A DNA stretch of 9,903 bases from Octopus sinensis (taxonomy: Eukaryota), in contig NW_021827791.1 in assembly GCF_006345805.1 (NCBI RefSeq), forward strand, positions 1 to 9,903, in the 5' to 3' direction. Numbering within the stretch: position 1 is the stretch's first letter; each line of letters begins with the position of its first letter. Below, in pieces: positions 1 through 9,903 of the stretch. The notes beneath the pieces were generated by a model that did no database searches, had not been told where the DNA came from, and saw nothing but the letters and a program-made list of their open reading frames with translations. The translations under genes were made by a program, and so were the position numbers.

Positions 1-8
1 TCCTTTTT

Positions 9-335
9 GTGACTTTGGGATTATCATTGCAGTTTTGGGTCTTTATTCGACATCAATTGGTTTATTTTAATGATGGAGGTTGTAGGAAATGATTGCACCG
101 GGGAACACCATGCGGCCATTCGAGTGGTGGCCTGTCACTCGCCAGTGATGTCTTCTTCCGATTATATTCTCAAAGAACGCTACAAAATTAGCTCCAAGAG
201 TTCTCCTGCGAAAATGACCGTTTAACCCCAAATTTACTTGCAGGGAGACATTTCGTGGAAGATTGGTTGCAATTCTTGACAATTCAGACACTTCCGTGAT
301 TAATCGACTCGACTTGTCTTCATGTGCTTATTCAG
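9..335 (+). other. Unidentified intron-bearing gene fragment (three candidate tiny introns: 9-32, 60-85, 220-243)
   Basis: Three GT...AG segments of 24, 26 and 24 nt match the intron size class seen elsewhere in the window. After splicing, every frame still contains stops and no family is recognisable. Confidence 0.35.
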
Positions 336-682
336 GAGATTGATGTGGACTATTCAAGAATTAAGGCTTATCCGGCTATAGATAGTCAGTGGGAGGCGAT
401 TGCTCCTCTTCGTATTTTGAGTTTCGATTGAATGTGCTGGAGAAAAGGTTACCACATTGTTTTAGTAGGTTTATTATCATTCAAAGTATATTTAAAAAAT
501 ATACTTTAAATAATATATTAAATTAATTATTTGTAGGTATTTTTCCACAGCCTTCCCAAGACCCAGTAATTCAGATAGCAAATGTTTTAAAGTCATACAA
601 CTCAGATCAGCGGTCAGAAACCAATCTAATATTCACTTTATCAGCATGTGCCCCAATTATAGGAGCGATAGTCATTTCCTTC
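336..682 (+). pseudogene. POLD1: DNA polymerase delta catalytic subunit, exonuclease-domain block (ExoI region), frameshifted
   Basis: Translates as EIDVDYSRIKAYPAIDSQWEAIAPLRILSFD(IE)CAG(R)K, then after intron 448-536 as GIFPQPSQDPVIQIANV...IFTLSACAPIIGAIVISF. This matches the Pol delta IAPLRxLSFDIECAGRKGxFPxPxxDPVIQI...CAPIxG signature. There is a -2 and a -1 deletion around DIEC (about 428-440). Confidence 0.9.
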
Positions 683-684
683 CT

Positions 685-1559
685 GGAACTCGACAATAAC
701 AAGGACGGACAACTCGCCTAGGAAGAAAACAATAAAAATTTTATATGTTAGAGAAAATTTATATGTAGGGGTAAAAAATATTGTTTTTTTAAATTATTTA
801 TAAATAAATCATTATAATACATCATAGTTATTGGTTAAAAATAATATAAAAATAAAATACTAAATAATTTTATTCTGTTTTAAAAAAAGTGTACTTAGCA
901 ATGATTCTTAAGAAATCATCCGTTTCAAATTCTTGGTAGTGATAACAAATTACTTTCAGTTCTTCTTCCTTTTTAAAGTCAGATTTAGGTATTCCAATTT
1001 TCCAATTTTCCGCATTCGCTTGACACATCCTCAATACTTTCTTCTTCTAGCACACAAAAAGTACATTCATTAGATTTGTCAGGTGAGGATGCGCGGTTGA
1101 AAAAAACTATTAAGAACCCGATGCCAAGATTCTAGTACATTTGAAGTTCTTGGAACAGATGATTTGATCCTTTCAAACCATGACCAAAATGAAACATCAT
1201 AACTTGGCGATTCACCATCAAGTCCGGGAATAAATTGTTTTTTGAAATATCCAAAAATTCATCTAGCTTTGTCCCTTTCGGTCAGTTCCTTTCTGCATAT
1301 TAAAGCAGATTTTTTCGAATTGGAAAAGAACCATCCTTCTCATCAATAAAAGCCAGAGAAAAGCAATCTCTGATATCTGGTGTGCCACTCTTTATCTTTG
1401 TATTGTACACAAAGTCCCTCGGCTTGGACTCTCCTCTCAAATCATCTGCCCAAGTGAAAGTTGCACCCCGACACCCTAGCCGAAGTAAAACTGCAGCCGA
1501 AGAGTTAATTAGCCTCTTTTCAAAGTCCAAAACAATTGTTCTGGGTCACTGTCAGTTAG
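685..1559 (-). mobile_element. Truncated Mutator-like (MULE) DNA transposon remnant: one putative terminus (about 685-722) plus degenerate transposase C-terminal half (about 865-1555)
   Basis: Minus strand, across frameshifts and stops: PRTIVLDFEKRLIN..F..ARVSGCNFHL, FSLAF, FGYFKKQFI, FWSWFERIKSSVPRTSNVLESWHRVLN..AHPHL. These are the MULE DFE, GCxFH, RTNNxxExWH and HP motifs. A GC-richer GGAACTCGACAA...GGACAACTCGCC block lies at the Pol delta breakpoint. No second terminus was found. Confidence 0.85.
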
Positions 1560-1588
1560 GTTTTGACCTCATTAAAAAAGTGCGTCAG

Positions 1589-3638
1589 CCTAATGCTGCT
1601 GATTAACCTCGTCGAAATGGCCAGAGTGGCGGGAATTCCTATTTCGTATATCTCTAAAAGAGGGCAGCAAATCAAAGTTGTGTCTCAACTGCTCAGAAAA
1701 GTGTTTTTTGGGTTATTTATTGGCAGTGTCGAGCACGTAGCACTCTCATTCCTAATTTGAAGGGAAGTGGAGACGAGGAGTTCACAGGAGCCACAGTTAT
1801 TGAGCCTGTGAAAGGGTTTTGGGGTCTTTTAGTTAATTTAAGTTATTTTAATTACCCAATTGCCACATTGGACTTTACTTCGTTGTATCCTTCGATAATG
1901 ATAGCTCATAACTTGTGCTATTCGACTCTTCTTGGGAGTTCATTTGAAGGGTTGTGGGTGTTTTATGTGTGAAGGCTCTCTGTGGTAGACTATGAGGTGT
2001 CGCCGACCGGAAATACGTTTGTTAGAAGCAATATTCAGAAAGGTCTTCTTCCTGAGATTCTTGAAGATTTGCTAAAAGCTAGAAAAAAGTGTTTTGAGGT
2101 CGAAATATATTTTAGAGCTAAACTTGAACTCAAATCAGAGACAGATCCAGTTCGGAGACAAATTCTAGATGGGAGACAACTTGCTTTAAAACTCTCGGCT
2201 AATTCTGTCTATGGGTTTACACTGGGGCACAAAACGGGCGTCTGCCTTGTTGGAAATATCTCAAGTGTGAACTTTTTTCTATTCAAAATTGCAGAGTGTG
2301 ACATCTTATGATCGAGAAATGATCGAAATGACTAAAATGAAATTGAACTTAATATAATATTCGAAATGGATATGAGTTTGATACTAAGGTTATCTACGGA
2401 GATATTGACTCGGTGATGTGTCGGTTTGGCTTTCAAGATGTCCAAAGGACCATGGAAGTGGGTTTTGAGGCAGCCAAGTATGTCTCCTCCCGATTTCCCC
2501 CTCCAATCAATTTAGAATTCGAAAAAGTATATTTATTCATATTTTTAAACCAGATTTATTATCCATATCTTCTAATAAATAAAAAACGTTACGCGGGAGT
2601 TGTATTTCCCGCGGGATCGTACAGTAAAGACAAGACTGACTATGAATCTGACCAGATTGACTGTAAGGGAATTGAGAATGTGAGAAGAGACAACTGCACG
2701 TTGGTGGCAAATCTGATTTCTGACTGTCTGAGGATAATTTTAGTGAACAGGTCATTATATATGGTCTGATTGGCAGAGATCCTGAGGAGGCTGTAAATCA
2801 CGTGAAGAAGACAATTTCTGAGTTGTTGAGTAATAAAGTGGATATTTCTCATCTTGTGATATCCAGAGAGCTCACAAGAAGAATATGCTGGCAAACAAGC
2901 TCATGTAGGAATTGGCAGCTCGGTTTGATTTTTTATTGATGGTTTAGAATGAAAAAGAGGGATCCTGGGACTGCTCCAAAAATCGGGGACCGTGTTCAGT
3001 ATGTGATCATTGCTGGGACTAAAGGGACAGCAGCATATTTAAAATCAGAGGTTCTGTTTAGTAATGATGGTTAAGGACCCTTTGTATGTACTTGAGAACA
3101 ACATTCCTATCGACACTGATTATTACTTCAACAATCAACTCAAAAAACCAATTTTACGAATTGTTGAGCCAATCTTGGGGGCAAAGACCGAGTCAATCCT
3201 TTTTGGTAAGTTCTATAATTGTGATAGTTAAGCTGGCGAACATGTCAATCAGAAGAAAATTATGACATCTAAAGTTGGAGGGTTGATGAGCTTTGTAAAG
3301 AAGTCGTTTTTATGTTTAAAGTGTCGTGTCCTAATGAAGGGTCACTTTATGGTTTATTTGGACAGAAGGTAATCGAGCTCTCTGTGACAATTGTGAGGAT
3401 GTGAGGAATCAGTATTCCGAGACTTATATCCGCCAGATGAGACAGTTAGAAGAACGGTTTTCTACATTGTGGGTTGAGTGCCAGCGATGTCAGGGGAGTT
3501 TTCATGATCAAGTTATATGTTCAAAGTTGGTTGTTGTTTGTGTGTTTTAGTCGTGATTGTCCTATTTTCTATATGCGAGTTAAGGCTAGAAAAGATTTGA
3601 AGGAAGTCTCTGATATTGTCGATCGTTTTGATTGGTAG
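1589..3638 (+). pseudogene. POLD1: DNA polymerase delta catalytic subunit, polymerase domain and CysA/CysB tail; 12 internal tiny introns; multiple frameshifts
   Basis: Motifs: [48 protein letters not shown] (motif A), [17 protein letters not shown] (motif B), YGDIDS (motif C variant), KKRYAG, KGIE.VRRDN, KQAHV, GDRVQY, EDPLYV, CLKC/CDNC, CQRCQGS...CSNRDCPIFY; stop TAG at 3636-3638. Introns: 1701-1726, 1816-1842, 1951-1974, 2089-2115, 2265-2294, 2527-2553, 2751-2776, 2923-2947, 3051-3075, 3206-3232, 3341-3365, 3526-3550, plus a probable one at 1560-1588. Indels near 2220, 2251, 2340, 2351, 2880 and 2908. Confidence 0.95.
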
Positions 3639-3832
3639 TTTTAAAATCTTTTTTGATATATTTTGTCACCGTCCAGACCGGCCGGGGCGCCAGATCGGTC
3701 AGGTCAATTATCTAAATACAAAACAAATATTTTTCCTACAAAACATTTCATTGCAAAAAAATATTGATAATAAAAAAATAAAATCTTATTAATAAAAAAG
3801 TTCTAAAAAGTTGAAAAGATTAGCATTAATCA

Positions 3833-4381
3833 ATGGTTTTAGTTGAATTAACTCGAGACACCCTCGAAAAAATTAGGGAGTATTTGGAATCAGGCCACTT
3901 TGATGATTCCTTGAGTTCGGAAGAAAGGGCACGAATACGGAGATATGCCAAAAATTTAGTTTCAAGGAGAACAACACCTACATTTCTAAAAATGGCTCAA
4001 AGTTGCGTTTTTTTTGTATCGAAGACACTGAACTTAAGTTAAAATTCATTGAAGTAGTGTATTTGTTTATTTAAATTAGGCTCAACACAATCTTAATCAC
4101 TTTGGACATGATAAATTGTACAGTTTATTGACACTCACCATTTATGGTGCCAGACGTACTGATGTGGAAAATGGAAATATGATGAAGTTGAAAGTGGCGA
4201 TGAAATTTTAATACGCCATGATGGGGATGCAAACCCGGGTTATAGAAAATACCCATTATACGACGAGATATCTGCACAAAAATATATTGTGAAAAATAGG
4301 GATCGAGAACTCGTAACGATAATTAATGAAGAGGATGAAAAAGATCAAAGGATCCATATTAGCAGAGTAAAAAAACTTTAA
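3833..4381 (+). pseudogene. Integrase/transposase remnant of the Ginger-like element (His part of the HHCC zinc finger fused to the C-terminal domain; DDE core absent)
   Basis: MVLV..IREYL..EERARIRRYAKN, -1 shift near 3955, FSFKE..KLKFIE, intron 4054-4079, AQHNLNHFGHDKLYSLL..IYGARRTDV. The frame then jumps near 4166 to ..SGDEILIRH..YIV..QRIHISRVKKL, stop at 4379-4381. No CxxC or D,D35E core lies in between. Confidence 0.7.
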
Positions 4382-4560
4382 CTGCAAATATTCATGGGGT
4401 TCGTTCTGTGTTTTTTCTCGTGTCATATTTACTTAATATATTGCGATCCTGAGGGGCAACGTCTTCTCGATCATCAGCAGCTTAAGATTATGATAATCAT
4501 TTTCGCTCAATATCTTTTTACTTAATTGTGAAATAATTGTGCCATTGTTACAAATTCGAC

Positions 4561-4620
4561 GCGGCCGAAGGCCGCATAGGGAAAAATATTCACATTGAAT
4601 CATCCGGCCGTAGGCCGGAT
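4561..4620. repeat. Two perfect GC-rich mini-hairpins with GNA triloops (4561-4575 and 4602-4620)
   Basis: GCGGCC-GAA-GGCCGC and ATCCGGCC-GTA-GGCCGGAT, read directly from otherwise AT-rich DNA. Confidence 0.9.
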
Positions 4621-5349
4621 TGTATTTTAGAGTTTTTATGATAAAAATAGAAATTTACAACATTTTTAAAAATTAAAAATGGATTTTTCTAATAAACTTT
4701 ATTGTTGAGAATTGTTTGGCTAACCTTGGTTAAAGCGTTTTTAAATAAAATGCAAAATCAATACGGTAATTATCTGGAAATGACTTGATGTTGGTTTTTT
4801 GTGAACTCAGTAACTTCAATATTTTGGCAAAAATAATATTAAAATCAACAAAAAAATGAACAGAAAAAGAAAATAGCTTCCGAAAGGTAGTTTTTATTAA
4901 AAATTTTATACATAACCGATCTGGCGCCCCGACCTATCTGGACGGTGACATATTTTTTCAATTAATTAGTTTATATGAAGAATTTTGTCAAAGTGATAGT
5001 TTTGAACTCAATCCATCGTTTTGTGTTATTTACTATAAATGGGAGGTAATTATATCATATAAATTAAACAAAACAAAAAATGTGATTGTGTTTTAATATA
5101 CATTCTGGAACAAATTCTATATGAAAAAAAATAAAGTTAGTCACTAGGGAAATTAAACAAATTAACTGTTTTGTTAGAAAAATTAAAGTTTGTTGTTTTT
5201 GTAATAACTGCCAAAAATTTACAAAATCGTAGATTTTGAATTCGAGGTTTTACTTTTTTGTGAAGAGTCTCTTGAATATTTCGATATGTTTATGAATCTG
5301 TTTGTTAATTCCGCTCTCTAATGACGCTATCAAATGTTTGCCATGTTTG

Positions 5350-5830
5350 GTGAGATGGAGAATGCAGAAAAAGAAAATTAGTTTCAATTATATTTATGTA
5401 AGCATATTGACCACCTGAAGCAGGTCGAGGTTGAGAAATGCCATAAATACGATCTATTGACAGGGAAGTTGTCCATTTTGTACGACGCTCAAGTGAAAAT
5501 AATTCCACTGATTTTGACTTGGGACGGGCTTGTTTCTAAGTTTTTTAAGAAATACATTGAAAAGTTGGCTATCGAAGACGCAACTCAGTCTTATATACAA
5601 TCAGTTGTATTGAAGAAAGCATTGGAGAGTATGATTGTTGAGCATAGGCATGGGATCAGAATCACTGATGAGGAGATAAATTCACCCATTAGTCTCCTAA
5701 TTGAAGCAAGTCATTTGTACAAAGTTAATATGTAGAATGAGGGAAAAAGAGTCGTAACTAACTTGGAGACATAGGATCAAAGAGTGGTGTTGGTTACTTC
5801 CTTCTCTAAAAGAAGGAGATTAACCTCCAG
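5350..5830 (+). mobile_element. 3' fragment of a non-LTR retrotransposon with a restriction-like endonuclease (R2/R4-type) C-terminus
   Basis: DHLKQVEVEKCHKYDLLTGKL..VKIIPLILTWDGLVSKFFKKY..YIQSVVLKK.LE resembles the EKxxKYxxL...IIPxxxTWDG...YIQSxVLKK tail of RLE LINEs. The upstream PD..D/ExK region is degenerate, no RT domain is present, and the boundaries are approximate. Confidence 0.7.
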
Positions 5831-6041
5831 CGGAAAACGGTCGGATTAACATCAATTAAATAATATTAACTTAATTAATTCAATTCTTAGAAATTTACAT
5901 GTAATAATCAAATTGATTTCTTTAAATTTTTTGATTATTTCTATTTTTAGTTTATCTAAATAATTTTGAAAATCAAAAAATTATAAGCAAAAATTATAAA
6001 AATTCAAAAAAAACGAAATTTAATTTTTTAATAACGTATTA

Positions 6042-7105
6042 TTAAAATTTTTTTAAAGATTCCAAAATTTTCAAAATTTCGTAAAATTCAGGCCTTTAAT
6101 ATTTATATATAAACTACCTTTTGGAATTTTCATATGCACAACAAAATTTTACAAGGTCAAGTAACACGGAAGGATATGCTTGTTTATATACATTTCTAAA
6201 AATATCAACGTTGACTAAAAAATTTTCATTTCTTGGAAGAACGTCAGGGTCGCTGCCAACTCTATTAATTAGCTAAAAAATTTCAACATGGTTTATTGAT
6301 ACCTCACATAGAATAATCCCAAATGAATAAACATCAGCTTTATAATTGTATTCCATCCCATTTAGTATTTCTGGAGCCATATAGAATACACTTCCCACGA
6401 CTGAATTTCGACCTTGTGAAGATTCGTAAATATTTTCATAAAACGTTTTGGACAGTCCAAAATCAGCAACAACCACAACTCCGTTCTTTACATATTTTAA
6501 TGTACTAATTGTACTTTTTTAATCAGACAATTATCCGATTTCAGATCTCTGTGCATAATATTTTGATTGTTCAAATACTTCTAACGAATAGATTACATAT
6601 TAGTACAAACCATTCCACATGCGATATCGACTGATATATCGATCTTACGTTTTAACGTAATGTTTATAGTTGAATTTAGTAACAATTGTTCCAATGATCC
6701 TCCACTGGCATATTCTGTAGAATAAAAACAAATGAAAACCAATCACCATCGAAATATGTTCCAGATTTTTATTTCTGCCAAAAAACAGCAAAATATTTGG
6801 ATGTCGTAATTTATTCCAAATTGAGACCTTTTGAGTTATTTAAAATATTTAACCTCTTTAATGGATGAAGAAGTCAAATCGTCTTTCAGCCATTTTACTT
6901 CTTTGATTGCGACTATTTCATTTGTTTTGAGAATCTTTCCCTATAAAAATAAGATTACGATTAATAAAAACCAAATATACTTTTCCATATTTTCCTTCAC
7001 CGATAAGCTTGTCATAAAAAATTTCGTTTTTTGCAAAGTAAAAAATATTTTGAGATACTTGTTCTGTGTAGCTTTTTATCTACGATCAGATCGTTCGTAC
7101 TCCAT
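6042..7105 (-). CDS. LIMK/TESK-like (TKL group) protein kinase, single-domain, apparently intact (about 282 aa; alternative start at 7150 gives about 286 aa)
   Basis: Spliced frame is open: IGEGKYGKVY, VAIK, HPNIL, EYASGGSL, HRDLKSDNCLIK, VVADFGLS, VVGSVFYMAPE, KADVYSFGIILCE, RVGSDPDVLPR, CC..KRP; stop TAA at 6044-6042. Introns: 6941-6971, 6828-6853, 6715-6739, 6581-6610, 6486-6514, 6273-6302, 6094-6117. The first exon(s) are ambiguous. Confidence 0.9.
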
Positions 7106-7236
7106 GTTTTTCTAAATTTAAATAAATTATTTTTACTTTTTATTCCACATTTCTTATTATTGTGAAATGATATGTTTAAATGACACAAATGCGGTATTTT
7201 ATTTATTTATCAATCCGCATCTATACCATTTCCCAT

Positions 7237-7425
7237 ACTAAATGGGATTTGCACCAAACTAAGTGGGATTAGCAGAAAACTAAATGGGATTAACGTCAAA
7301 CTAAATGGGATTAACATCAAACTAAGTGGGATTAACGTCAAACTAAGTGAGATTAATACCAAACTAAATGGGATTAATACCAAACAATATGGGATTAATA
7401 GCAAATTAAATGGGATTAACACTAA
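7237..7425 (+). repeat. Left TIR array: 9 x 21-bp units, consensus ACTAAATGGGATTAAYRYCAA
   Basis: Contiguous units start at 7237, 7258, 7279, 7300, 7321, 7342, 7363, 7384 and 7405, with no spacers. Confidence 0.95.
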
Positions 7426-7766
7426 AAAATTCTTTTTTTTAAATTTTATGTTAATGTCGGCAATATTTCGGCAAATTTGTTTGAGGCAAGTACGGATTAA
7501 ACATGGTGGTCCAGTTACTATGGTGTTGGACAATGCACCAGCTCACAACGGTATCGAAGAAGTTTGCTTCTAAAAAAACATCGCTTCTAAAAAAACCAAA
7601 TTTTATTCCAACAAGGAGAAGGCTTATCAATTAAAGAGTATCGAACACGGATACTTGAACAAATAATTGTGGATGGAATGAAAACCATTACGTCTAAAGA
7701 TTGTGTAATCTTTATTTCTGGAATACAGGGAAATATAAATATGGTTAACATAAAAAAATGAATTTT

Positions 7767-7871
7767 TTGGTATTAATCCCATTTAGTTTGGTGTTGATCC
7801 CATTTAGTTTGACGTTAATCCCATTTAGTTTTCTGCTAGTCCCACTTAGTTTGGTGTTAATCCCATTTAGT
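7767..7871 (-). repeat. Right TIR array: 5 x 21-bp units, inverted relative to 7237-7425
   Basis: The reverse complement reproduces the left units in order, including the diagnostic unit 2 (AGTGGGAyTAGCAGAAA) and unit 3 (AACGTCAA). Confidence 0.95.
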
Positions 7872-8470
7872 ATGGTATAGATAAAAAAGAGGACATTAAT
7901 TAATTGTACAAATAATAATCATTAAAAACAAACTCTAATGATTAAATGACGCACACGATGTTTTATTTAATTCTTAGAAATAAAAGACAAATATACTGCA
8001 ATTTCTTAAATCCGTCGCTTTTCGATTCAGCTTCTTTTAATTATTTCGATGGATTATTTAAAATCCTCTCTTCAAATTAATCAAAATTTTAAAATATTTA
8101 TTACACGCATCATTGTAATTGTGACGGATTGTGTTAAACTTTTTAGCAACAAAAAATTTCTATACTATGCTATATTTCGGTGACCCATTTGTTTCTGCTT
8201 CTCAATTTTCCAAGATTTTTTTCTTTTTCTTCACGAGTAAAGAGAAAATTTCTCTGAAGATCTTAAATAAAATGGAACGTTTAAATGTGACAAATATCAA
8301 AAAATTTAAACATAACAACAATTCCAAAACTCAAATTTAATGAAACTGTTAAAGATTTTGACTTATTGAGTATTGAGTCATATTTAGATAGTCACTTATT
8401 TTTTTGTTAGATCTACAATTACATGTAGAAATTCTAATTTTCTCATTAATTGATAATCTAATTATGTGAC

Positions 8471-8506
8471 ATGGGCTGCGCGATACCTATGGGCCGCGTG
8501 ATACCT
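8471..8506. repeat. Tandem 2 x 18-bp GC-rich repeat
   Basis: ATGGGCTGCGCGATACCT followed by ATGGGCCGCGTGATACCT (2 mismatches). Confidence 0.85.
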
Positions 8507-8628
8507 GATATGACCTTGAAATGTGCAATTTTGACATTGATGGGATTAAATTATAAATCTTTTAATTTTTTTTTAAAGGAAACATAAATATTTGCAAGAA
8601 AGAAATTAAAGATAGCTATGTTAATTAA

Positions 8629-8809
8629 AGGCCTCACGAGACACCCGACCAGCCTCGCGAATGGCGAAGCCGTTCCCTCGGATCACAGCAATCGACAGAC
8701 GTTCCAGGAGCCAAGAAAACTCTCTTGAATCGTGACTAGTCTTTGAAATCCGTCGACCGAGCGAGTGAAGGAAGCGGAGTGTCTTGGGACCGAAGATCCA
8801 GGAGGACCT
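8629..8809. mobile_element. Possible Kolobok-like miniature non-autonomous element (181 bp)
   Basis: Sharply bounded GC-rich island flanked by TTAA (8625-8628 and 8810-8813), with ends AGGCCTC... and ...GAGGACCT forming a short imperfect TIR. AGG termini with TTAA fit Kolobok better than piggyBac (CC ends). Confidence 0.5.
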
Positions 8810-9286
8810 TTAATTAGACCGCGACTCATTCTTATCATTTAATAATTTACTAAATTAGCTAAAAACTCTCTCATTTTGAAAAAAAATTATATTTGTAGGA
8901 ATTTAATTATCAAAAATTAATTTTTTTGGTGGAAAACCTAAATTTCTTGAGTTATTTCTAGCGTGCAAGTATATTTTGCAGCAATGTCCTCGTACAAAGG
9001 TTATGTAAAGAATAGTTTGGAATATCAAATTTTAAAAGATGCTTTACAGGATAAATTTCCTGAACATCTTACAAAGCAAAAAAATATAGACTAGTTAAGA
9101 AAATTGAAAATTTTACTGTAATTGAAACTTAGAGGTAAAAAAAAACAAAAAAAAACTTAGAGGTATACGACAAAAAATAATCAAATTTATTGAAAAAGAA
9201 TACTATTCCAAATTTAAACTAATATTAAGAATATTAATTTTTTGTAAAATTGGCTCTCGAATCGATAGATTCGAATATATTAATAA

Positions 9287-9903
9287 CTAGCTCGGCAGCT
9301 CGCTTCGCTCACCGCGACCTAGCTCCTGCGGAGGGCCTGTTTCATCAAACAACTATAAGTTTATGTAGATGTATAAAACTACCTGGTTTAATGTAACCCT
9401 ATTCTATCGCCTGTTGATAAACGATGTTTGTCGTCCGTCCTTCCTTGGCATATATGAATAAATTTTCTCTTCTGCCTACCCTCGAGCATCCCACATACAG
9501 CTGTCCATGTGAAAAGCACTCACTCTCTAAAAATAACCCAACTACCTTTAATGACTGTCCCTGGGCCTTGTTTATTGTCATTGCAAAACTCATCCTCAAA
9601 GGAAATTGCAGCCTTTTAAATCTAAATGGTAATTCATCAGAAATTATCGGAATTCGTGGAATATAAACATCCTCACCTCTATACTTACCTGTTAATATCG
9701 TAGCCTCTATTACGTTAGCCATCAAATTTTTGATAACTAACCTCGTTCCGTTGCATAATTTAGGTGGCGCAAGATTTCGTAATAAAACCACTGGAACGCC
9801 TATCTTTAACTTTAAAAGATGATTCGGCATTCCAGAGGGATCTAAGGATTTTAAAAAATTCAATCCGGTTGAATTTTTAGAAAATAACAAAAAAATAAAG
9901 AAA
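9287..9903 (-). mobile_element. Helitron 3' portion, running off the right edge of the window
   Basis: A PIF1-type helicase C-terminus is followed about 110 nt downstream by a GC-rich imperfect hairpin (9293-9314) and a terminal CTAG (9290-9287) followed by T on the minus strand. Confidence 0.9.
9399..9870 (-). CDS. Helitron RepHel PIF1-like SF1 helicase C-terminal segment (partial)
   Basis: [82 protein letters not shown]. Homology breaks down above about 9870. Confidence 0.9.

Follow-up and report, generated by a model that had tools for sequence, protein, structure and literature searches.

Gene content of the window

The 9,903-nt stretch analyzed herein (contig NW_021827791.1 of assembly GCF_006345805.1, positions 1 to 9,903; hereafter the window) is AT-rich, eukaryotic sequence with a GC content of 33% (approximately 29% in its non-coding part), and it was found to carry two genes interrupted by ultra-short introns, namely a copy of the gene for the catalytic subunit of DNA polymerase delta (Pol delta) at 336-3638 on the plus strand and a small protein kinase gene at 7105-6042 on the minus strand, with transposon debris lying between and around them. 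Together, the two genes contain 20 short introns (12 in the Pol delta copy and eight in the kinase gene) that measure 24-31 nt, with a median of 26 nt and a mean of 26.75 nt, and all 20, as well as an additional 89-nt intron of the Pol delta copy, have GT...AG ends. We interpret them, with a probability of roughly 0.8, as ordinary U2-type GT-AG introns of an animal genome that has undergone genome-wide intron shrinkage to about 24-31 nt, near the physical minimum.

The conceptual product of the Pol delta copy was 58-60% identical to POLD1 of fish, molluscs and arthropods in a database search covering the whole 568-aa query, the full-query alignment requiring five extra frame corrections that are independent of the introns. 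In a distance tree, its sister group consisted solely of animals in 200/200 bootstraps, and it formed a long branch that was basal to the sampled bilaterians in 125/200 and grouped with flatworms in 34/200. The tree, the intron positions shared with other animals and the best matches of the kinase, which are animal TESK kinases, all indicate that the host is an animal.

Detection of the short introns

The exon-intron structures were determined by using our own protein-to-genome spliced aligner, which allows introns in three phases, frameshifts and gaps, with profiles built from five POLD1 proteins for Pol delta and from eight TESK-like proteins for the kinase, and the short-intron junctions are thereby predicted from protein homology and the reading frame. 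When the aligner was limited to GT-AG introns, 12 short introns of 24-30 nt were found in Pol delta between 1701 and 3550, and a run without any splice-site preference returned the same 12 gaps at equal lengths, offset by at most 3 nt. Among the 256 possible pairs of donor and acceptor dinucleotides, GT-AG gave the highest total alignment score (1870 vs 1735 for the next pair, with a median of 1609), which is far above chance. Five of the kinase introns were found automatically, and the other three, which fall in the N-terminal part where conservation is lower, were positioned manually. A preliminary description of this DNA, made by reading the letters, had counted about 20 introns of 24-31 nt, and the independent spliced alignment arrived at the same set of 12 plus eight; it had also called them well supported, and it had overlooked the broken state of the gene that carries the Pol delta introns.

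Two further candidates were considered and rejected. When homology alone was used, the aligner suggested one more intron at 2612-2641, which lacks GT-AG ends, stays in frame and contains no stop codon, and is thus better taken as a coding insertion; this 30-nt in-frame segment (..PAGSYSKD..) was present in none of the compared POLD1 proteins and was read as specific to the lineage. The consensus of U12-type introns comprises an RTATCCTT donor and a TCCTTAAC branch site. None of the donors in the window matched it, the closest being GTATCAAT at 6302, and AT-AC ranked 140th among the 256 dinucleotide pairs.

Positions and age of the Pol delta introns

Intron positions in POLD1 of the fish Albula and the horseshoe crab Limulus were mapped onto the same alignment columns as the Pol delta copy. 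As a result, 11 of its 13 introns, the 89-nt one included, were located at the identical codon and phase to Albula POLD1 introns, and eight of these 11 also matched Limulus. The introns whose positions are common to fish and Limulus are those at 1701-1726 (26 nt, GTG..CAG, phase 0), 2089-2115 (27 nt, GTG..TAG, phase 2), 2265-2294 (30 nt, GTG..CAG, phase 0), 2527-2553 (27 nt, GTA..CAG, phase 0), 2751-2776 (26 nt, GTC..CAG, phase 2), 2923-2947 (25 nt, GTT..TAG, phase 2), 3206-3232 (27 nt, GTAAG..AAG, phase 1) and 3526-3550 (25 nt, GTT..TAG, phase 2), all on the plus strand. Shared with fish are those at 1816-1842 (27 nt, GTT..AAG, phase 2) and 3051-3075 (25 nt, GTT..AAG, phase 0), together with the 89-nt GT-AG intron at 448-536 (phase 1), which has the position and phase of a 3422-nt intron of fish POLD1. 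The remaining two of the 13 were 6 and 9 nt off, with equal phase and in gappy parts of the alignment: that at 3341-3365 (25 nt, GTC..CAG, phase 1) lies 6 nt from an intron of both fish and Limulus, and that at 1951-1974 (24 nt, GTT..GAAG, phase 2) lies 9 nt from a fish intron. The placement of the latter is ambiguous, as an alternative donor at 1960 would give an in-frame intron of 15 nt (1960-1974).

Viewed from the other side, 12 of the 14 fish introns within the C-terminal 580 residues of POLD1 are kept in the window. The counterparts of the window introns span 93-3422 nt in the fish gene and 544-6091 nt in that of Limulus. Because codon and phase agree with those of the fish and Limulus introns, the Pol delta introns are of ancestral animal origin and have contracted to about 26 nt without shifting position, so that they arose by shortening, not by gain.

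The 89-nt intron contains an AT-rich, perfect palindrome of 11 nt (AAAGTATATTT/AAATATACTTT) and tandem AT repeats of 13-14 nt. It may represent a tiny intron enlarged by insertion.

State of the Pol delta copy

The copy begins with an exon of the ExoI region at 336-447, which is followed by the 89-nt intron and a second exon at 537-682 ending at consensus column 247. Further Pol delta exons that could be joined by GT-AG introns were not found in the region 1-335, and an in-frame TGA is located upstream of the copy at 297-299. From 683 to 1589, sequence without Pol delta homology takes the place of the 154 residues of consensus columns 248-401 (ExoII/ExoIII region), which were not found anywhere in the window. 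The C-terminal two thirds follow in 13 exons at 1590-3638, closed by a TAG stop at 3636-3638. The intervening stretch 683-1589 itself comprises AT-rich filler at 720-900 and two adjacent transposase-like open reading frame (ORF) fragments on the minus strand at about 1000-1530, whose motif (..RTSNVLESWHRVLN..) recalls MULE-type transposases, to which we presumptively assign them, although they gave no Pfam match.

At least six frame breaks were recognized in the copy, at about 429, 2219-2220, about 2251, about 2352, about 2880 and about 2908, all within conserved stretches and without intervening sequence. In the first exon, two bases are missing in the ExoI motif SFD|IECAG (about 429-432); two extra bases are present at 2219-2220, and one base is missing at about 2251; the break at about 2352 falls between ..MTKMKLNL and YNIRNGYEF, and those at about 2880 and 2908 flank EYAGKQAHV on either side. 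Furthermore, the YGDTDS of catalytic motif C is changed to YGDIDS (DTD to DID). Judging from these features of the sequence, the Pol delta copy in its assembled form is not functional and most probably represents a young unprocessed pseudogene. Because the copy is broken, 12 of the 20 short introns would therefore be relics in a dead gene, and the copy is unsuited to RNA-based validation.

An intact kinase gene with eight short introns

In contrast to the Pol delta copy, the kinase gene is intact. It encodes a TESK-like protein kinase (TKL group) of 280 aa in nine exons at 6042..7105 on the minus strand, with the ATG at 7105 and the stop codon ending at 6042, and its product is free of frame breaks from ATG to stop. 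The product covered positions 4-257 of the 258 of Pfam PK_Tyr_Ser-Thr with an E value of 2.8e-55, and its best named relatives in a database search were animal TESK kinases with 36-46% identity. Eight introns within 843 coding bases correspond to a density of one per 105 nt.

In the order of transcription, the introns are located at 7058-7083 (intron 1, 26 nt, GTA..AAG), 6941-6971 (intron 2, 31 nt, GTT..TAG), 6828-6853 (intron 3, 26 nt, GTT..AAG), 6715-6739 (intron 4, 25 nt, GTT..CAG), 6581-6610 (intron 5, 30 nt, GTT..TAG), 6486-6514 (intron 6, 29 nt, GTA..AAG), 6273-6302 (intron 7, 30 nt, GTA..TAG) and 6094-6117 (intron 8, 24 nt, GTA..AAG), all on the minus strand. Support for intron 1 is weak owing to the lack of N-terminal conservation, and its placement is also ambiguous, an alternative at 7072-7100 (29 nt) being likewise in frame. 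Intron 6 would measure 20 nt (6505-6486) if the donor at 6505, which is in frame as well, were used instead. The three introns whose length is a multiple of three, namely introns 5, 7 and 8, would each introduce an in-frame stop when retained (3/3).

Splice signals and exonic look-alikes

At the donors of the 20 short introns, position +3 was occupied by T in nine, A in six, G in three and C in two, and positions +3 to +6 were mostly T; GTAAG occurred in one of the 20, at 3206. The donor variants GTG, GTT, GTC and GTA with a single GTAAG are those that the preliminary description had listed. When compared with the animal consensus CAG|GTAAGT, the real donors matched on average 4.6 of the nine positions vs 3.6 for exonic GT sites. 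On the acceptor side, position -3 was A in eight, C in six, T in six and G in none, so that the acceptor is HAG; the GAAG acceptor reported earlier at 1974 was recovered, whereas the AAG acceptors number eight and not seven, the exception in an account of the introns that was otherwise accurate in almost every detail. No branch-point motif was detectable among the 20 introns, in line with the first reading, and the only hint was an A at -9 in 10/20 (p 0.03, uncorrected) and at -10 in 9/20, with n = 20. The impression that composition differs by gene also proved sound: the interior of the Pol delta introns was G/T-rich with G-runs (G 0.21, T 0.52, A 0.20) and that of the kinase introns A/T-rich (A 0.40, T 0.43, G 0.07), and the G fraction per intron differed with p 0.003.

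GT..AG pairs of 24-31 nt number 122 in the two pre-mRNAs; 20 of them are the introns and 66 are unused pairs lying wholly within exons, and the latter served as decoys (n = 66). On the exon side, the real introns showed an AAG|GT bias, with A at -3 in 11, A at -2 in 11 and G at -1 in 13 of the 20. G was the last exon base in 13/20 real introns vs 8/66 decoys (p 8e-6), and a purine in 19/20 vs 28/66. G at position -3 of the acceptor was absent from the real introns (0/20) vs 19/66 of the decoys (p 0.005). The interior of the real introns was U-rich and C-poor, with a T fraction of 0.48 vs 0.30 in the decoys (p 1e-7), and the 12 nt upstream of the acceptor contained 49% T vs 29% upstream of exonic AG sites. 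A rule that requires three cues, with a purine in position -1, a base other than G at -3 and an interior T fraction of at least 0.30, retained 19/20 introns and 11/66 decoys, and the sole real intron failing it was the doubtful kinase intron 1.

The donor consensus on the intron side is thus degenerate, as is the polypyrimidine/branch region. Nevertheless, GT, AG and length are insufficient as the whole signal, because the 66 exonic look-alikes remain unused and the real introns carry additional cues; exon-side and compositional cues persist. Of the earlier statement that the signals amount to little more than GT, AG and length, the degenerate intron side and the narrow length range were upheld, and the sufficiency of these elements was not.

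Transposon-like and other surroundings

The remainder of the window contains numerous transposon-like sequences. Pfam searches of five transposon-like ORF fragments returned no matches, so that their names are based on motif resemblance. Downstream of the Pol delta copy, a pair of 52-nt terminal inverted repeats (3653-3704 and 4910-4961, 83% complementary) delimits an element at 3653-4961, which contains degraded ORF remnants at 3833-4380, integrase-like on visual inspection and without a Pfam match, and two GC-rich hairpins at about 4555-4625 (gcggccgaaggccgc and tccggccgtaggccgga). An ORF fragment on the plus strand at 5290-5735 (..IIPLILTWDGLVSKFF..), also without a Pfam match, is possibly the tail of a retroelement protein.

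Beyond the kinase gene, inverted arrays of a 21-nt repeat (CCAAACTAAATGGGATTAACA) lie at 7233-7426 and 7766-7876 in 9.2 and 5.3 copies, respectively. The approximately 340 nt between them include the fragment ..VLDNAPAHN.., which recalls a Tc1/mariner-type DDE transposase, to which we tentatively assign it; repetitive arms of this length are uncommon. At 8471-8506, an 18-nt GC-rich unit (ATGGGCCGCGCGATACCT) occurs twice in tandem, and a GC-rich island of about 200 nt at 8630-8830, surrounded by sequence of about 28% GC and explained by neither Rfam nor an ORF, may be a short retroposon. An intact ORF of 163 aa on the minus strand at 9399-9890 corresponds to the C-terminal part of a PIF1/Helitron-type helicase and is 64-72% identical to many animal copies; a GC-rich stretch at about 9287-9330 that ends in CTAG may be the 3' end of the element bearing this helicase. 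An Rfam scan of the whole window detected no small nuclear RNA (snRNA) and no other RNA above threshold, the sub-threshold match to mir-1923 at 9685-9767 (34 bits vs a gathering score of 94) lying inside the helicase ORF, and a search of the window for tRNAs found none.

Comparison with known ultra-short-intron systems

The ultra-short-intron regime is already published for dicyemids and myxobolid myxozoans, reduced splice motifs included. In Dicyema, 16 introns measured 26.2 ± 1.9 nt (Aruga 2007, PMC2222250), and a median of 27 nt was reported for Dicyema sp. (Zverkov 2019, PMC6543705, which cites Ogino 2010 on dicyemid ultra-short introns), values that compare well with the median of 26 nt in the window. 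The likeness extends to animal genes with the standard code and to intron positions conserved with other animals, and possibly to the splice motifs, of which the 5' one has dwindled to 'GTa' in myxozoans and Dicyema japonicum and the 3' one to 'AG' alone in D. japonicum and non-myxobolid myxozoans (PMC13644364). The D. japonicum genome consists of 48.9% repeats and has a GC content of 36.7% (Lu 2019, PMC6736024); in transposon load, the window is closer to Dicyema than to Henneguya, whereas its non-coding GC of about 29% is below the Dicyema average. The preliminary description had mentioned dicyemids among the lineages with tiny introns and implied a contrast with the present standard-code, repeat-rich genome. 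This contrast does not hold, as Dicyema itself has been described as an animal whose standard-code genome is rich in repeats and carries introns of about 26 nt (PMC6736024, PMC2222250).

The myxobolid myxozoans are likewise animals, with intron medians of 22-27 nt (Hadjez et al. 2026, PMC13644364), a reduced 5' motif and weak A residues upstream of AG, the latter being found in both myxobolids and Dicyema (PMC13644364). The genome of Henneguya salminicola has 29% GC (PMC13644364), so that the low non-coding GC of the window fits Henneguya better than Dicyema, and a long-read assembly such as that of H. salminicola could explain the Pol delta indels. On the other hand, myxozoan genomes are described as relatively transposon-poor, whereas the window is crowded with transposons, and the 58-60% identity of its Pol delta to bilaterian orthologues seems high for fast-evolving cnidarians. 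An origin from an animal lineage beyond dicyemids and myxobolids is possible but unlikely. Protein database searches with Pol delta, the kinase and the helicase-like ORF yielded no match above 72% identity and thus none from the same species, an exact look-up of an ORF of the window had no match, and metagenome scans with a transposon terminal repeat and with the putative 3' end of the helicase-bearing element were likewise negative.

Outside the animals, ciliates provide the closest resemblance in size, with GT-AG introns of 20-35 nt in Paramecium and 15-16 nt in Stentor (cited in PMC2222250, PMC13644364), and their introns would likewise interrupt translation when retained. Ciliates are, however, not animals, whereas the Pol delta of the window groups with animals and its introns are orthologous to those of fish and Limulus. 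Paramecium, moreover, uses a variant genetic code. The introns of chlorarachniophyte nucleomorphs measure 18-21 nt. Nucleomorphs and microsporidia (the latter cited in PMC13644364) share the extreme miniaturization of introns in reduced genomes, but they belong to other lineages and are gene-dense and transposon-poor, with introns that are shorter or sparser.

Evaluation of alternative explanations

If the introns are ordinary U2-type introns as proposed above, they would be recognized by intron definition through a conventional U1/U2 spliceosome, with which the observed signals appear compatible. The narrow range of lengths would reflect a steric lower limit combined with deletion bias, and the in-frame stops or frameshifts arising from retained introns would subject unspliced mRNA to quality control. 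How such introns are recognized was stated to be unknown at the close of the recent myxozoan study (PMC13644364). On the view put forward in the preliminary description, little besides GT, AG and a length ruler defines the introns, and a reduced spliceosome removes them. The restriction to 24-31 nt, the weak intron-side donor consensus and the lack of a branch motif all agree with this, as do the similarly reduced logos published for such genomes (PMC13644364). A ruler of this kind, however, leaves unexplained why 66 GT..AG pairs that fit in length but lie entirely in exons go unused, and does not account for the additional significant cues, namely G as the last exon base, the lack of G at -3 and the U-rich interior; furthermore, myxozoans with equally short introns retain the conserved branch-binding region of U2 snRNA as well as U2AF1/2 (PMC13644364). 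We therefore regard recognition by length ruler and reduced spliceosome as distinctly unlikely. Still less credence is given to the proposal that the window stems from a third independent animal origin of sub-30-nt introns, that two modes of intron recognition, rather than local mutation bias, underlie the compositional difference between the Pol delta and kinase introns, or both.

Scarcely credible is the notion that the inserts are not spliceosomal, but represent either ciliate-type internal eliminated sequences or random insertions into genes undergoing decay. The decay of the Pol delta copy could be taken in its favor. The lengths of the internal eliminated sequences of Paramecium also overlap the 24-31 nt range of the window introns. 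The TA..TA boundaries expected of such sequences, however, are possible within ±4 nt in only 2/20 inserts, and the best pair starting with TA ranked 20th of 256. In addition, the positions and phases agree with spliceosomal introns of fish and Limulus, the host gene groups with animals, and the intact kinase gene carries the same kind of inserts.

With regard to the Pol delta copy, we consider it rather unlikely that the gene is functional and that assembly artefacts, such as uncorrected long-read indels and a mis-join or collapse at a transposon, account for its frame breaks and for the lack of 154 residues. Such an artefact would fit the absence of stop codons from 1590-3638 once the indels are bridged and the preservation of all splice dinucleotides (24/24 in the short introns), both of which also speak against a long period of decay, and two of the indels, at 2251 and 2908, fall in short homopolymer runs. 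The 2-nt changes at about 429 and 2219-2220, in contrast, lie outside homopolymers, and all six indels (six of six) fall in Pol delta, with none in the approximately 1.56 kb of checkable kinase and helicase-like sequence, a distribution whose chance we calculated as about 0.05. The DID in the catalytic motif, the approximately 900 nt of unrelated sequence in place of the 154 residues and the in-frame TGA upstream at 297-299 also weigh against a functional gene.

Several observations weigh against our interpretation of shrunken animal introns residing in a dead Pol delta copy and an intact kinase gene. The Pol delta protein is still well conserved, with 10/165 invariant residues changed, mostly conservatively, which fits a functional gene and likewise speaks against a long period of decay. 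Some of the Pol delta indels could be errors of long-read assembly: PacBio reads went into the candidate source assemblies, contigs from PacBio and Illumina data being combined in that of D. japonicum and Racon alone having been used to polish that of H. salminicola (PMC13644364). The donors of the window favor T over A at +3 (9 vs 6), as opposed to the 'GTa' of the Dicyema and myxozoan logos, in a small sample that includes 12 donors of a dead gene. Finally, none of the eight kinase introns (0/8) lies at the exact position of an intron in the TESK genes of brittle star, butterfly and comb jelly, two of them being near such positions in these three genes at distances of 6 and 2 nt. Since no position matches exactly, the kinase introns are argued for by frame restoration and domain completeness only, and the mismatch could reflect intron gain, sliding, or a kinase that is not a true TESK orthologue.

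Taken together, the window represents no new kind of system, and it adds to the known ones the positional orthology of the Pol delta introns, the decoy test and the broken state of the Pol delta copy. In this gene, ancestral animal introns of kilobase size have contracted to about 26 nt while keeping their positions. The features separating the introns from their exonic look-alikes are the last exon base, U-richness and a position -3 that is never G. Introns of about 26 nt probe the minimum sequence that the spliceosome needs.

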